A stretch of 64,000 nucleotides of DNA, from the sequence record NC_061442.1. One strand, 5' to 3'. Position 1 is the stretch's first letter; each line of letters begins with the position of its first letter. Shown here piece by piece: positions 10,354 through 16,072 of this stretch. Position numbers and translations under genes: made by a program. The notes beneath the pieces were generated by a model. It worked only from the letters and a program-made list of their open reading frames with translations. It made no database searches and was not told where the DNA came from.

Positions 10354-12888
10354 ATGGCGAAAGCGAACAACAAGGCCGAGAAAAAGGCCGAGAAGAAAGC
10401 TAAAGTTAAAGCTAAGAAAGGTAAAGCAGAAGCAGTAGCGTCCGACGATGTTGGTGGCGTAGAACTGCTGGGCTTTGACCTTGCAAGTCTGATGGACGAT
10501 GTGCTTGACGGCATCGAAAAGAAAACGAAAGTAAGCTCGCAAGATGCGGCGCGACATGCACCACGTATTTCGACTGGTTGCCTTGCGCTTGATATGTACC
10601 TGTCTGGCGGTATCGTACCTGGCGGCTGGTATACGTTCAGCGGAGGCGAGCAGTCCTGTAAGTCTACAATGACCATGAGTATCATGGCGAGTCTGATTCG
10701 TCTGAAATACTCTGGCATTAGCGTAGTGTTCGACTACGAAGGTTCGACCGATGCAGAGTACGTTGCTGGTCAGTTGAAAACGTTTGGCGTTAAGGTCGAC
10801 CCGAAAACTATCTTCGGTGTGCGTGACGACAAAGACGGTAGCTGGATTGTTAAGCCTCAGATTCGTTACTACGCACCAGACAACGGTGAGCGCTTCTTCG
10901 ACTACATGTCCATGTTGCGTCGTCGCCTGCCTGACAAGATCGTTGAGAAAGACGGCACCGCGTACTACATCTTTGAGAACAACAAAGAGAACGCGAAGAA
11001 GGTTGCTGGCAAGTACGATAAGAAATGGTTCAGTCGTAACAACCAGTTCAAAGTGCCTGCGAACGATGGTCACATGCAGGCGATGGTTATCGTTGACTCC
11101 TATCCAGCGATGATGCCGGATCAGGTCGATGACGATGATGGTTCGAAAGCAATGGCGTTGCAAGCGCGTATGTTCTCTGACGGCATCAAACGTTTCCGTG
11201 GCGGTATGCGTCGTAAGATGATGACTATCGTTGGCGTTAACCAGTTGCGTCAGAAACCTGCTGTGATGTTCGGTAGCCCTGAGTATGAGCCTGGCGGCGA
11301 TGCGTTGAAGTTCTATTGCTTCGACAAAGACACTCTGATTCGTACCGACCACGGTGTGTTGACAGCGCCTCAGATCAAAGCGCTGTTGGACGCTGGTACA
11401 GAAGTCTCTGTAGAATCGTTCGACGGTTATCAGAAAATCAATGGCGCGTGGCTTGTTGACGACGCACCGTTCCCGTTCGAACTGAACGCTGGTGGTCATG
11501 TGTACGTAGGCTCGGCAGAACATCGCCAGTTCACGCTTATGCACGACCTGACTGCCGAAGGTACTCCTGTACTGCGTCCTGAGTGGAACACGCTCAATCA
11601 ACTGGCCCAGCATCCAGAAGCGCAAGGTCAGTACGCTGCTTTACGTGTACCACCTGTTAAGGAACTGAAAGAGAAAGTTCCTGATGCCTTTGATGAAGCC
11701 TCACAACTGGTGCGTAACTTACTCGGCAACTGCGATCCTGTCAGCAAGCAACTGCCTCTTGTTACTCAAGGCGAAACAACGTATGCTGCGAACTGCCTGT
11801 TCATAGACATGGTAGGCGAAGATACCGACACTGGTTCGTTCTCGTTCTGGGTAGAGAAGCTACTGGCTATCGGTATCTATGCTTATGCAGATGAAACTGG
11901 TATCTGGATTCCTGGCCTGAACAAACACGAACTGGAAGCGGCTGTAGAGCAGGACGAACTCGGTGCGTTTGCCGGTATCAGTTTTGAAGCGACCTGCCGT
12001 CAACGTCAGACTCAAATGCTGACCGTGATTGTCGATCACTTCCCTGAGTTGGTACGTTACGTTCTGGACTATCAGTTGCAGACAGGTGAAGACAAAATCT
12101 ATCTGGCGCCTGAGAACGACTTCGCACAAGCGCTTGATCTGATTCTGCATAAAGAGATCGCTGGCTACGATGACATGTATGACCTGCTGATGTTCCAGCT
12201 GGCGTATGTTGATGACTGGTACAACTTCGACTCTGCAATTCTGCCTGTGCCGTTTACGCTTCGTGCGCTCGACGAACAGCGTGAGTTCTGGGATGTGAAC
12301 GTTGAGGAAACTGCGGTAGTTATTACCAACGGCTTCGTCAGTCATAATAGTGATGTGCGTGTGCGTCTGGCCTCTCGTGCAGTACCTGAAGGTTGGCCGA
12401 AGCTGAAAGACGCTCCAGGCATCGTCGGTGAGAAGTCTGTTACCGTCGAAGGTGGTACTGACCGTTATCGCTTCATCGCTGCTAAGACCATCAAGAACAA
12501 GATGGGCGGCATCCCGAACCAACAGACGTGGTTACGTTTGTGGGAAGCTGATGGTAACGGCGAAGCGCGAGGATTTGACCCAGTGTTCGATACGTGGCAT
12601 TACCTGAAAACTCTCGGTCTGGTTAACGGCACCCGTAAGTCGTTCAAACTGAAAGCACCGTGCCCGCTCGCATCTGATGTTAAGATGGACTGGGATGACT
12701 TCCGTACTCTTATCAACGGCAGCAAAGAACAAGTTGTCGGCGTGTGTAAGAAACTGAAAGTCAAACCATCAGGCCTGCGTTTGTGGTGCTTCAAGTTCGT
12801 TCAGTCTGTCAAAGGTAACGACATGCTGAAAGCTGCTATCAGTAGGTCTGCCAAGAAGTCTGATGACGACGACGGCGACGACGAGTAA
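10354..12888 (+). CDS. recA: RecA/UvsX recombinase containing an intein
   Basis: ISTGCLALD, Walker A GGEQSCKST, VIVDS, ALQARMFS, VNQLRQK, PGGDALKFY|SDVR, KTIKNK. Confidence 0.92.
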   Translation: MAKANNKAEKKAEKKAKVKAKKGKAEAVASDDVGGVELLGFDLASLMDDVLDGIEKKTKVSSQDAARHAPRISTGCLALDMYLSGGIVPGGWYTFSGGEQSCKSTMTMSIMASLIRLKYSGISVVFDYEGSTDAEYVAGQLKTFGVKVDPKTIFGVRDDKDGSWIVKPQIRYYAPDNGERFFDYMSMLRRRLPDKIVEKDGTAYYIFENNKENAKKVAGKYDKKWFSRNNQFKVPANDGHMQAMVIVDSYPAMMPDQVDDDDGSKAMALQARMFSDGIKRFRGGMRRKMMTIVGVNQLRQKPAVMFGSPEYEPGGDALKFYCFDKDTLIRTDHGVLTAPQIKALLDAGTEVSVESFDGYQKINGAWLVDDAPFPFELNAGGHVYVGSAEHRQFTLMHDLTAEGTPVLRPEWNTLNQLAQHPEAQGQYAALRVPPVKELKEKVPDAFDEASQLVRNLLGNCDPVSKQLPLVTQGETTYAANCLFIDMVGEDTDTGSFSFWVEKLLAIGIYAYADETGIWIPGLNKHELEAAVEQDELGAFAGISFEATCRQRQTQMLTVIVDHFPELVRYVLDYQLQTGEDKIYLAPENDFAQALDLILHKEIAGYDDMYDLLMFQLAYVDDWYNFDSAILPVPFTLRALDEQREFWDVNVEETAVVITNGFVSHNSDVRVRLASRAVPEGWPKLKDAPGIVGEKSVTVEGGTDRYRFIAAKTIKNKMGGIPNQQTWLRLWEADGNGEARGFDPVFDTWHYLKTLGLVNGTRKSFKLKAPCPLASDVKMDWDDFRTLINGSKEQVVGVCKKLKVKPSGLRLWCFKFVQSVKGNDMLKAAISRSAKKSDDDDGDDE
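11317..12348 (+). mobile_element. intein (344 aa) in RecA at KFY/S
   Basis: Starts CFDKDTLIRTDHG (block A), has WDVNVE (block F), ends GFVSHN followed by Ser; removal restores GGDALKFYSDVR. Confidence 0.9.
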
Positions 12889-13465: not shown

Positions 13466-14167
13466 ATGAAAAAGATTCAACACGTAGTTCTTCCGACCGA
13501 TGCACTCAACGGACTCATTCATGGTTATTATCACCACAGCAAAGGTACGGACGAATTTTGCAAGTCACTGTTCTACATTGACGTGACTGATCGTAGCGCC
13601 TCAGATGCGCTATACTCTATTCTCAAACGAGACAGGACCTCAGGCATTGTTCCTATGGGTTACGATAGTCAAAAAGATGCGCGAGGCCACACTTCTCCTG
13701 CGTCTTTGGCGGTTGTACTGTCTAACAATTTACTGCATCTGGATGACAAGAAAATGTCCAGAGGCATTTTAACCATCTTCTCCGCTCTGGCTAGAACCAC
13801 GCACACCAACAACACACAAATAACTGTGTATGGGGAGCCGGGCGTAGACAAAATTCTAAACATAGTGCGTAGCGTTGGCTACAAGGACTATATTGAGGGT
13901 GAAGGTGCAGATGTTGTGCTTGGCGAATTTGATCTTGAGTCAAACATGACTATAGACCATTTCGTTCACATGGCTATCGAGCCTAAGTTCGAAGACGCTA
14001 TCCGCAACTCGCCTGCGACGGAGTTTAAACTGGGAGCAAACTTTATGTTCATGCACCCAGACGAGCTGGATAAGGTTGTCCGCATGATTCGCCGTTGCAG
14101 TAAGATCTGCATCATGCACCCTGACATCCATCGCTATTACTTTGAGAACGTAATCTGTAAATACTGA
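13466..14167 (+). CDS. hypothetical protein
   Basis: AGGAG SD; 233 aa. Confidence 0.75.
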   Translation: MKKIQHVVLPTDALNGLIHGYYHHSKGTDEFCKSLFYIDVTDRSASDALYSILKRDRTSGIVPMGYDSQKDARGHTSPASLAVVLSNNLLHLDDKKMSRGILTIFSALARTTHTNNTQITVYGEPGVDKILNIVRSVGYKDYIEGEGADVVLGEFDLESNMTIDHFVHMAIEPKFEDAIRNSPATEFKLGANFMFMHPDELDKVVRMIRRCSKICIMHPDIHRYYFENVICKY

Positions 14168-14215
14168 TCAACAACCGAACACATTGCTGTGTGTAGTCTA
14201 GCCCGACTTGGGCAG

Positions 14216-14246
14216 GGGAGAGCCGGATGGCCTCCCCATTTTTTTT
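14216..14246 (+). terminator. Rho-independent terminator-like hairpin
   Basis: GGGGAG-AGCC-GGAT-GGC-CTCCCC followed by ATTTTTTTT. Confidence 0.65.
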
Positions 14247-14269
14247 ATCTACGGCAGCAGGAGAACAGC

Positions 14270-15259
14270 ATGTCCAAAACGACTCCTCAAATCTTCCTCG
14301 ACCTGTTTATCAAAGACGTTAGAATCTTTTTGCCTAAGTTCGACAAAGGTCTGGACGCGTACTTCTTGAAGTGCAAAGGCAAACCTGGAAACTTTGGCGT
14401 AGCGATACATCAATACTTGAAGTGGCTGAGTCCTATAGCAAAGCATCCAGAGAACCCAAGCAAACTCTCTATTACTATATCGGGTTACCTGCATTACTTT
14501 TGGCAATTGTCTAAACCAAACTTTGTGTTTGAATCGACACTGGTTAATCACTTGGCGGACTCTGAATTGCCAGATAGGCTGCCGACAGAGATCTTGCAGA
14601 AACTCCCTTACTGGTGTCAGTGGGTAACATTGCCTATACATCTGGAGAATGCGTTCAGGACATTGCATCTTGACTTCGATGGTGCTTTTGTTGGGTACTC
14701 TCAGATCAACAATAGGCCTGTACTTGTTTTATGTGCTCCATTTGCTCCAGGTGATGAAAGCATCAAGTCAAATAACTTCACACCGTCTGTAACGTCATTC
14801 GTATATCTGGACGAACCTGTCGACCCTTGGTCAATGCTAAAGAACATGCACCTGTTAAATCTGGTTGATACTCTTGAGGACCCAGACTTTCGGGAACTGA
14901 TGTTCAGCGTATACCACTACCTAACAAAAGTTATGTGTTGTGTGATGTACATCTGTTCGCAGCAGGAAGCGTTATATACAGAAGGTCATACTCAGCCCAA
15001 GCCTCAACGTTTAGGCAAGAGCTATCGTATCACTCCGCCTAAGTCAGATCGCATGATCAATATAGGTTCGGAGATGATGCAGATTATCAAGGACTTCGAA
15101 TCAGAAGTCGAAACGTGTACTCGCGCTTTTAACGGACGCAAACCGCACCTGAGAAAAGCGCACTACCACCACTTCTGGACGGGACCGAAAGCTGGACATC
15201 GTAAGCTCGTTTGCAAGTGGTTGCCGCCAAGCGTTGTTCGAGGCACATCGCCTGAGTGA
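14270..15259 (+). CDS. AcrVA2/FinQ-family-like protein
   Basis: ELPDRLPTEILQKLPYWCQWV and C-terminal KPHLRKAHYHHFWTG...KWLPPSVV; AGGAG SD before ATG 14270. Family match is from recalled sequence. Confidence 0.7.
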   Translation: MSKTTPQIFLDLFIKDVRIFLPKFDKGLDAYFLKCKGKPGNFGVAIHQYLKWLSPIAKHPENPSKLSITISGYLHYFWQLSKPNFVFESTLVNHLADSELPDRLPTEILQKLPYWCQWVTLPIHLENAFRTLHLDFDGAFVGYSQINNRPVLVLCAPFAPGDESIKSNNFTPSVTSFVYLDEPVDPWSMLKNMHLLNLVDTLEDPDFRELMFSVYHYLTKVMCCVMYICSQQEALYTEGHTQPKPQRLGKSYRITPPKSDRMINIGSEMMQIIKDFESEVETCTRAFNGRKPHLRKAHYHHFWTGPKAGHRKLVCKWLPPSVVRGTSPE

Positions 15260-15304: not shown

Positions 15305-16072
15305 ATGAAATCTCGTGTACAACATGCGTATATTCCTGATATGGAATCGTTTGACCCTTACGTCCGTTCTCTGTGCCATATGGCGCGAGCACTGGACACA
15401 CCGAACTCTAACTACGGTAAGTTGAAACGTGTCGTGATCATTGGTACGTCGAAGCGCGTGGTCGAAGCCTACGTTAAGCAGTTACTCAACACAAACAACC
15501 TGCCACACACTCTCATTTGTTTTGGTGTAGACGAATCGCCTATCAGCCACAGAGACTATTCCTATGCTGGCGCCCACGTTGTGCTGATGCACGATCTGAC
15601 TTACGTTGATAGTGGTACAATGGGCAAGGTTGCCGCTCGCGTCCTAGAAATCATAGACAGCCTAAAACAGAAAGAAGGCGACACTGAACTCAAAAACAGC
15701 GAGCTGTCTTTGGTCTACTCGAACCCGCACCTGTGGTCTGCTATTCTTGACTACGGCGCTGCTTCATTCATGAACACGGCGGGCCGCAACATTGAATACC
15801 GTAGCGGTTTGGTTTCATCTATCGGTCTTGACGCGTTGATGAAATGCGAAAGCAACCAACAATACCACGAGCTTCGTGCCGAAACGATTACTATAGGCCT
15901 GGAGTTCTTCTGCATACACACGGACTACCTGCTATCCAAAGTACATAATCTGTTGTGGTCACTCTCGTGTGATGATTGCAAGTTCAAAAAGAATCACCGC
16001 ATCATCTTCCATGAAGACTTTCGTCGTTTATTCTTCGAAGAATACATCCTAAGAGACTTCAAGGGCTTTTAA
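15305..16072 (+). CDS. hypothetical protein
   Basis: GGAGG SD; 255 aa. Confidence 0.72.
   Translation: MKSRVQHAYIPDMESFDPYVRSLCHMARALDTPNSNYGKLKRVVIIGTSKRVVEAYVKQLLNTNNLPHTLICFGVDESPISHRDYSYAGAHVVLMHDLTYVDSGTMGKVAARVLEIIDSLKQKEGDTELKNSELSLVYSNPHLWSAILDYGAASFMNTAGRNIEYRSGLVSSIGLDALMKCESNQQYHELRAETITIGLEFFCIHTDYLLSKVHNLLWSLSCDDCKFKKNHRIIFHEDFRRLFFEEYILRDFKGF

Follow-up and report, generated by a model that had tools for sequence, protein, structure and literature searches.

The gene described here lies at positions 14270-15259 on the + strand of a stretch of 64,000 nucleotides, hereafter the window, which is a segment of the genome of Erwinia phage pEa_SNUABM_35 (MZ443788.1 / NC_061442.1), a jumbo phage of 261.7 kb from the genus Alexandravirus whose isolation host is Erwinia amylovora. 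Window position 14270 corresponds to position 200270 of the record. The open reading frame is intact, with an ATG start, 329 codons and no internal stop, and its product (pEaSNUABM35_00242, QZE60159.1) carries the GenBank label "hypothetical protein". A mechanical list of reading frames extends the same frame upstream to a GTG at 14189, an extension that crosses a terminator-like hairpin. We preferred the ATG at 14270 because AGGAG is located 7 nt upstream (14259-14263) and because this start agrees with the GenBank CDS and with the N-termini of seven close homologs. An earlier note on this DNA, made from the letters alone, had quoted several stretches of the protein, and each was found in the 329-aa frame in the order given: ELPDRLPTEILQKLPYWCQWV at aa 99-119 (nt 14564-14626), VMCCVMYIC at aa 221-229 (nt 14930-14956), RITPP at aa 253-257, NIGSEM at aa 264-269, KPHLRKAHYHHFWTG at aa 291-305 (nt 15140-15184) and KWLPPSVV at aa 316-323. 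The frame is far beyond chance, because 3,821 representatives in a set clustered at 50% identity match its profile at E<=1e-3 (2,481 at E<=1e-10) and dN/dS against the ortholog of phage Alexandra is 0.14. No source naming this protein or its clusters was found.

The same note had proposed that the protein is related to the anti-CRISPR AcrVA2 and to the plasmid protein FinQ, and had held that a lack of profile or structural similarity to them would speak against this. Significant similarity was obtained by both routes. First, when the single sequence was compared with all PDB chains by phmmer, AcrVA2 (7ci1/7ci2) was the sole match, with E=1.9e-7 over two stretches, and a profile built from 51 homologs of a large protein database matched AcrVA2 with E=1.4e-33 over chain residues 12-318 of 323. 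Second, an AlphaFold2 model predicted from the 51-homolog alignment (pLDDT 85.8, pTM 0.86) retrieved only AcrVA2 entries (7ci2_A/7ci1) from the PDB by Foldseek, with E=2.8e-13 to 3.6e-12 and TM 0.60-0.66 (0.64-0.66 at E=2.8e-13), and the next match followed at E=0.42. Overall identity to AcrVA2 in the structural alignment was 18%. Third, tblastn against plasmids gave 165 records, mostly of IncI type from E. coli and Salmonella, in which the matched genes were mostly annotated "protein FinQ" (E about 1e-7), and hhalign of the profile with FinQ gave a probability of 99.9% (E=1.7e-36). The membership of the pEa_SNUABM_35 protein in the AcrVA2/FinQ family is therefore very secure. Among family collections, phrog_6160, whose PHROG function is listed as unknown, was matched at E=1.2e-48 over aa 45-328, and all 51 homologs carried the precomputed Pfam tag PF26125, so that a Pfam family for this fold apparently exists. 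No paper mentioning PF26125 was found in the literature searched. Pfam-A (in a copy lacking PF26125), NCBIfam and PADLOC gave no meaningful family match, and the matches in BFVD were to uncharacterised phage proteins only.

Four regions of the protein can be distinguished. The N-terminal helices (aa 1-62, 14270-14455, +), delimited with alignments and the model, are peculiar to the jumbo-phage clade; in most distant family members the alignment starts only at about aa 60-80, and FinQ is without aa 1-62. They are followed in the alignments by a helix carrying W78 and E88 and by the start of a conserved LP..IL..LPYW motif (aa 63-112, 14456-14605, +), which extends to about aa 115. A central beta-sheet and a long buried helix make up aa 113-240 (14606-14989, +), as judged from the alignment, the model and dN. 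In the predicted structure the long helix (205-230) contains the Cys-rich VMCCVMYIC stretch, in which Y227 and C229 are nearly invariant. This region is the most divergent of the protein (dN 0.345 against Alexandra) and, by analogy with AcrVA2, is presumed to be the body that binds the target peptide. The conserved C-terminal module (aa 286-329, 15125-15256, +), placed with alignments and the AcrVA2 mutant data, contains H293-x-R295-x-x-H298, H300, W303, G305 and W317-L-P-P. Among close relatives its 44 residues show 83% identity, falling to 44% in distant relatives, compared with 65-75% and 13-25% for the rest of the protein. A conserved C-terminus joined to a divergent remainder mirrors the pattern published for the AcrVA2 family by Marino et al.

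The residues on which AcrVA2 depends are retained. The PDB chain numbering is offset by one from that of Marino et al. in both aligned stretches, and with this offset H286, R288 and H291 of AcrVA2 correspond to H293, R295 and H298 of the phage protein, W79 to W78 and D89 to E88. In AcrVA2, H286A, R288A and H291A abolished the knock-down of Cas12a with binding preserved, and W79A and D89A led to a moderate loss of function (Marino et al., 10.1101/2022.11.29.518452). In the 51-sequence alignment R295, H298 and W78 do not vary and H293 hardly does, and none of the four differs between four phage allele classes and FinQ. The HxRxxH motif singled out in the earlier note is present, as a motif of catalytic type. 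The family majority has D at the D89 position, and E88 is a conservative change.

The gene sits among replication and recombination genes, and its surroundings hold neither a recognisable anti-defence island nor an adjoining Aca-like regulator. Directly upstream, nucleotide comparison and folding revealed a conserved non-coding element (14152-14252, +), which forms the upstream edge of the exchangeable cassette described below and consists of a motif (14177-14199), a GC-rich hairpin (14215-14237) and a T8 run (14239-14246), the latter two being terminator-like; the hairpin lies 20 nt ahead of the start codon. The element is 92% identical in phage SNUABM_40 and about 80% in Y3, where the hairpin stem is preserved despite altered bases, and it is kept in relatives in which the coding DNA on either side is replaced. 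It may act as the terminator of the upstream transcript, as a recombination anchor, or as both. A role as a recurring phage promoter was rejected since the motif occurs only once in the 64-kb window, and the long outer stem of its minimum-free-energy fold (z = -2.1) was set aside since it is not conserved in SNUABM_40. No Rfam family matches 14152-14252, and a scan for sigma-70 promoters gave counts near the shuffled expectation.

Both neighbours of the gene are variable as well. The upstream gene hyp233 (13466-14167, +, 233 aa) is hypervariable or absent among relatives, with alleles that assort independently of those of the AcrVA2-like gene. The downstream gene hyp255 (15305-16072, +, 255 aa, alpha/beta fold) likewise occurs in several allele classes that assort independently among near-identical backbones. 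It is probably co-transcribed with the AcrVA2-like gene, because the two are separated by only 45 nt with no terminator-like site between them. The products of hyp233 and hyp255 show a weak mutual similarity (blastp E=0.002), and neither has a match in Pfam, PHROG or PADLOC. The AlphaFold2 model of hyp255 (pLDDT 84) had no significant neighbour in the PDB (best E=0.005, TM 0.3). We considered the two genes as an RNase or regulator partner of the AcrVA2-like protein and rejected this for want of a family match and of a PDB relative of the hyp255 model. Taken together, the comparisons indicate that the region from 13.4 to 16.1 kb is a mosaic islet inside an otherwise conserved block. Elsewhere in this block, the UvsX/RecA-like recombinase (10354-12888) has 844 aa compared with a profile of about 500 aa. 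Its RecA domain is split by an insertion of about 340 aa, which Alexandra, Y3 and Yoloswag share; searches of Pfam and of PDB sequences gave no match for this insertion, which may be intein-like or an added domain. The annotated genes at 192-209 kb of the record are all on the + strand, and the 64-kb window contains no tRNA genes and no Rfam family at the gathering threshold.

The locus is fixed in position, and most of the coding sequence in it is exchanged. The order of sigma-like, SSB-like and UvsX-like genes, small ORFs and the AcrVA2-like gene is shared by Alexandravirus, Sasquatchvirus (Y3) and Yoloswagvirus. When the DNA of pEa_SNUABM_35 was compared with that of SNUABM_40, identity was 92% at 14152-14248, no similarity was detectable at 14249-15159, and similarity resumed from 15160, which is codon ~297, inside the HxRxxH motif. 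Comparison with Y3 gave the same edges, with a dissimilar cassette and both flanks alignable. The exchanged cassette (14249-15159, +) thus takes in the gene from codon 1 to about codon 297, where the HxRxxH motif lies. Its GC content is 44.6%, below the roughly 50% of UvsX and hyp690 and the 57% of the C-terminal 100 nt. At the protein level, the flanking proteins are 92-98% identical to those of Alexandra, whereas the AcrVA2-like protein is 67% and hyp233 32% identical; against SNUABM_40 the values are 85-95% for the flanks, 54-58% for hyp142 and hyp255, and 31% for the AcrVA2-like protein.

The history of the alleles was followed using the identity of the sigma-like protein to that of pEa_SNUABM_35 as a yardstick for the backbone. 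Phages with a backbone identity of 97-98.6% have AcrVA2-like proteins that are 67-69% identical to the one studied here, those at 92.8-94.8% have either 74-77% or about 30%, and those at 88-90% have 26-28%. By this comparison the alleles fall into discrete classes (about 75%, 67% and 30%) that are incongruent with the genome phylogeny. In pairwise Nei-Gojobori estimates against Alexandra, dS of the AcrVA2-like gene is 1.6, compared with 0.18-0.59 in hyp142, hyp86, UvsX and hyp255, and its dN/dS of 0.14 indicates purifying selection. Because of this high dS and low dN/dS, the diversity is best read as that of imported old lineages, each under constraint, and not as a recent burst of substitutions. 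There was no direct sign of positive selection; pairwise dN/dS was 0.06-0.20 in every gene segment, and a claim of positive selection was dropped for this reason. The diversity could also be neutral mosaicism of an accessory islet, because hyp233 and hyp255 shuffle their alleles in the same way. A fixed locus with exchangeable recognition cassettes was not found described within the literature searched.

The family itself has been described by others. AcrVA2 binds the N-terminal nascent Cas12a polypeptide, which leads to translation-dependent loss of the mRNA, and about 1,800 AcrVA2 homologs, FinQ included, are present on plasmids and megaphages, typically without Cas12a (Marino et al., 10.1101/2022.11.29.518452). 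The cas12a transcript is reported to be depleted with a 5'-to-3' gradient, its 3' portion being lost. In the preprint FinQ was presented as a homolog whose C-terminal domain is similar and whose N-terminus diverges, and the authors proposed that this silencing paradigm "may be widespread ... against different targets". A 2026 editorial on the Nature version of this work (PMC13728456) states that the C-terminal part of AcrVA2 associates with both ribosomes and polysomes and that mRNA decay is brought about by recruiting a cellular enzyme. As far as the preprint and the editorial go (10.1101/2022.11.29.518452; PMC13728456), nascent-chain mRNA knock-down has been demonstrated for AcrVA2 alone in the family. 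AcrVA2-like proteins were also noted in huge phages by Al-Shayeb et al. 2020, and ORF43 of Shewanella phage vB_SbaS_Y11 was reported as AcrVA2-like, a Shewanella genome being reported to contain a type I-E system. Within the literature searched, which included the Marino et al. preprint and the editorial, no paper establishing a second target for any family member was found. To our knowledge, no bacterial protein other than AcrVA2 is so far known to read a nascent polypeptide and destroy the corresponding mRNA.

The phage protein can be compared with these relatives in several respects. AcrVA2 (Moraxella bovoculi prophage; PDB 7CI1, 7CI2) is of the same length class (323 aa vs 329 aa) and has the same three-part fold, an end-to-end profile match, equivalent essential residues and, like the phage protein, a conserved C-terminus with a divergent N-terminus. 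It differs in sequence (18% identity; D89 vs E88 in the phage protein, of which the first ~60 residues are clade-specific) and in setting: AcrVA2 is encoded by a prophage, whereas the present copy belongs to a lytic 262-kb jumbo phage, has no acrVA1 neighbour and is found in a phage of E. amylovora, which is described with no type V system (PMC9004355). FinQ of IncI-type plasmids shares the LP..IL..LPxW motif, the Y-I-C-S helix motif and the HxRxxH...WLPP C-terminus, and it acts in Enterobacterales without Cas12a, where it lowers the transcripts of a rival element. However, it has 259 aa and lacks the N-terminal domain (about 95 aa of the phage protein), is plasmid-borne, targets the F tra operon and is only 21-23% identical to the phage protein. 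PHROG 6160 and PF26125 are matched by the phage protein and its homologs, and add no function to them, that of the PHROG being listed as unknown. The vB_SbaS_Y11 protein and the huge-phage proteins are likewise phage-borne, with hosts reported to have type I-E and not type V; those reports present putative anti-Cas12a proteins or merely list them, and describe no fixed locus or exchangeable cassettes.

The absence of Cas12a from the probable host, which the earlier note had assumed, agrees with the published description of E. amylovora, in which type I-E CRISPR-Cas and a type I-F remnant array are reported and type V is unmentioned (PMC9004355). Judged from such host descriptions, there is no Cas12a in the host for a type V-A anti-CRISPR to act on, and it would therefore be wrong to call the protein an anti-Cas12a Acr. 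The novelty of a target other than Cas12a had been overrated in that note, as Marino et al. (10.1101/2022.11.29.518452) had already proposed other targets, with FinQ and the megaphage copies included. The family, its spread to hosts without Cas12a and the hypothesis of different targets are all previously published.

With these points in mind, we think it rather probable that the protein is a full-length, functional member of the AcrVA2/FinQ family that silences a defence or rival-element target other than Cas12a co-translationally, with recognition cassettes that are exchanged between phages. By analogy with AcrVA2, the variable N-terminal part and central body (aa 1 to ~290) would recognise a short peptide close to the N-terminus of one specific protein as this leaves the ribosome, and the conserved C-terminal HxRxxH module, which associates with ribosomes in AcrVA2, would trigger decay of the target mRNA via a host RNase, so that the target protein would never be made. 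The target would not be Cas12a, because the host has none; it would most likely be a component of the host's defences or a protein encoded by a competing mobile element, and it would vary between strains, because alleles are exchanged among phages that share a host species. The phage group keeps several old recognition versions and exchanges them by recombination bounded by the upstream non-coding element and the conserved C-terminal module. Alexandra has served as a non-chimallin comparison phage in published work; the group is therefore without the nucleus by which phiKZ-like phages shield their DNA, and there is room for dedicated anti-defence genes. A bolder form of this proposal is that the Alexandra, Y3 and Yoloswag phages maintain a fixed locus at which old recognition modules are swapped onto a constant ribosome-engaging C-terminal module, with each allele class silencing a different host-strain-specific defence or rival-element protein, in effect a programmable system of natural origin; this we put forward only tentatively, as a possibility that may well prove wrong.

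Several other explanations were weighed. The protein might serve in warfare between elements, as FinQ does, by silencing a gene of some rival, be it a plasmid, a prophage or a co-infecting phage. FinQ, a confirmed homolog, reduces or terminates the transcripts of the F tra operon, the transfer operon of the F plasmid; many related jumbo phages share the same host; and the allele diversity and recombination would fit any variable adversary equally. However, FinQ is without about 95 N-terminal residues of the phage protein, blocking conjugation would be of little benefit to a lytic jumbo phage, and no candidate competitor target was identified, and we consider such a purely FinQ-like role unlikely, if still worth keeping in view. 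A role in host take-over or self-regulation, in which the protein would remove a conserved housekeeping mRNA of the host or time one of the phage's own genes, would suit the fixed site after the sigma-like, SSB-like and UvsX-like genes in three genera, the core-gene-like persistence, the location in a replication and recombination block and the purifying selection. It predicts a conserved recognition region, yet this region is replaced between phages of 93-99% backbone identity, and dN is highest in the central body; we therefore regard it as quite unlikely. It is very improbable that the protein is a structural relic that has given up sequence-specific silencing, such as a protein that binds ribosomes in some general or other capacity: the mechanism has been demonstrated for a single family member and none of the Pfam or NCBIfam models searched (the Pfam copy lacking PF26125) names the protein, but the protein retains the fold over its full length together with every essential motif residue, the gene is under purifying selection, and thousands of homologs have the same architecture. 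Finally, it is hardly credible that the protein is a true anti-CRISPR against Cas12a, maintained for those hosts in which type V-A is present, although the only characterised full-length relative inhibits Cas12a, since E. amylovora is described with only type I-E and a type I-F remnant (PMC9004355), the family is mostly found without Cas12a (10.1101/2022.11.29.518452), and the recognition surface is probably not conserved, with 13-25% identity to distant members outside the C-terminal module and 18% overall to AcrVA2.

Returning to silencing of a target other than Cas12a by exchanged recognition cassettes, the pEa_SNUABM_35 copy can be a useful entry point to a question left open by the discoverers of AcrVA2, namely what is targeted by the thousands of homologs whose hosts have no Cas12a. 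The protein is full-length, its motif is intact and the phages are in culture. In addition, near-identical phage genomes differ mainly in the recognition cassette, and their comparison could expose allele-specific targets. If the swapped-module locus were true, a set of near-isogenic phages from nature would give access to several new targets of co-translational knock-down at once, and the family would become the second class of anti-defence protein to be described in jumbo phages. A 2026 review names Tad1 as the sole anti-defence protein described from such phages, and a verified function would thus fill a gap for jumbo phages without a nucleus. The analysis also bears on annotation: about 50 copies in Erwinia and Dickeya jumbo phages labelled "hypothetical protein", and one labelled "mycothiosynthase", can be renamed as AcrVA2/FinQ-family proteins, and not as anti-Cas12a proteins.

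The copy with the latter label is gp126 of phage RisingSun (L007:3324-4325), annotated 'putative mycothiosynthase', which belongs to the AcrVA2/FinQ family; the label is probably a misannotation. Directly upstream of it, gp125 (L007:2809-3297) is a generic GNAT acetyltransferase. We considered gp125 as an AcrVA5-like protein and rejected this, as its PDB matches were weak and to generic GNAT proteins, with none to an anti-CRISPR. More distant jumbo-phage copies, such as those of RisingSun and Klebsiella phage KpLz-2_45, are located in unrelated gene contexts.
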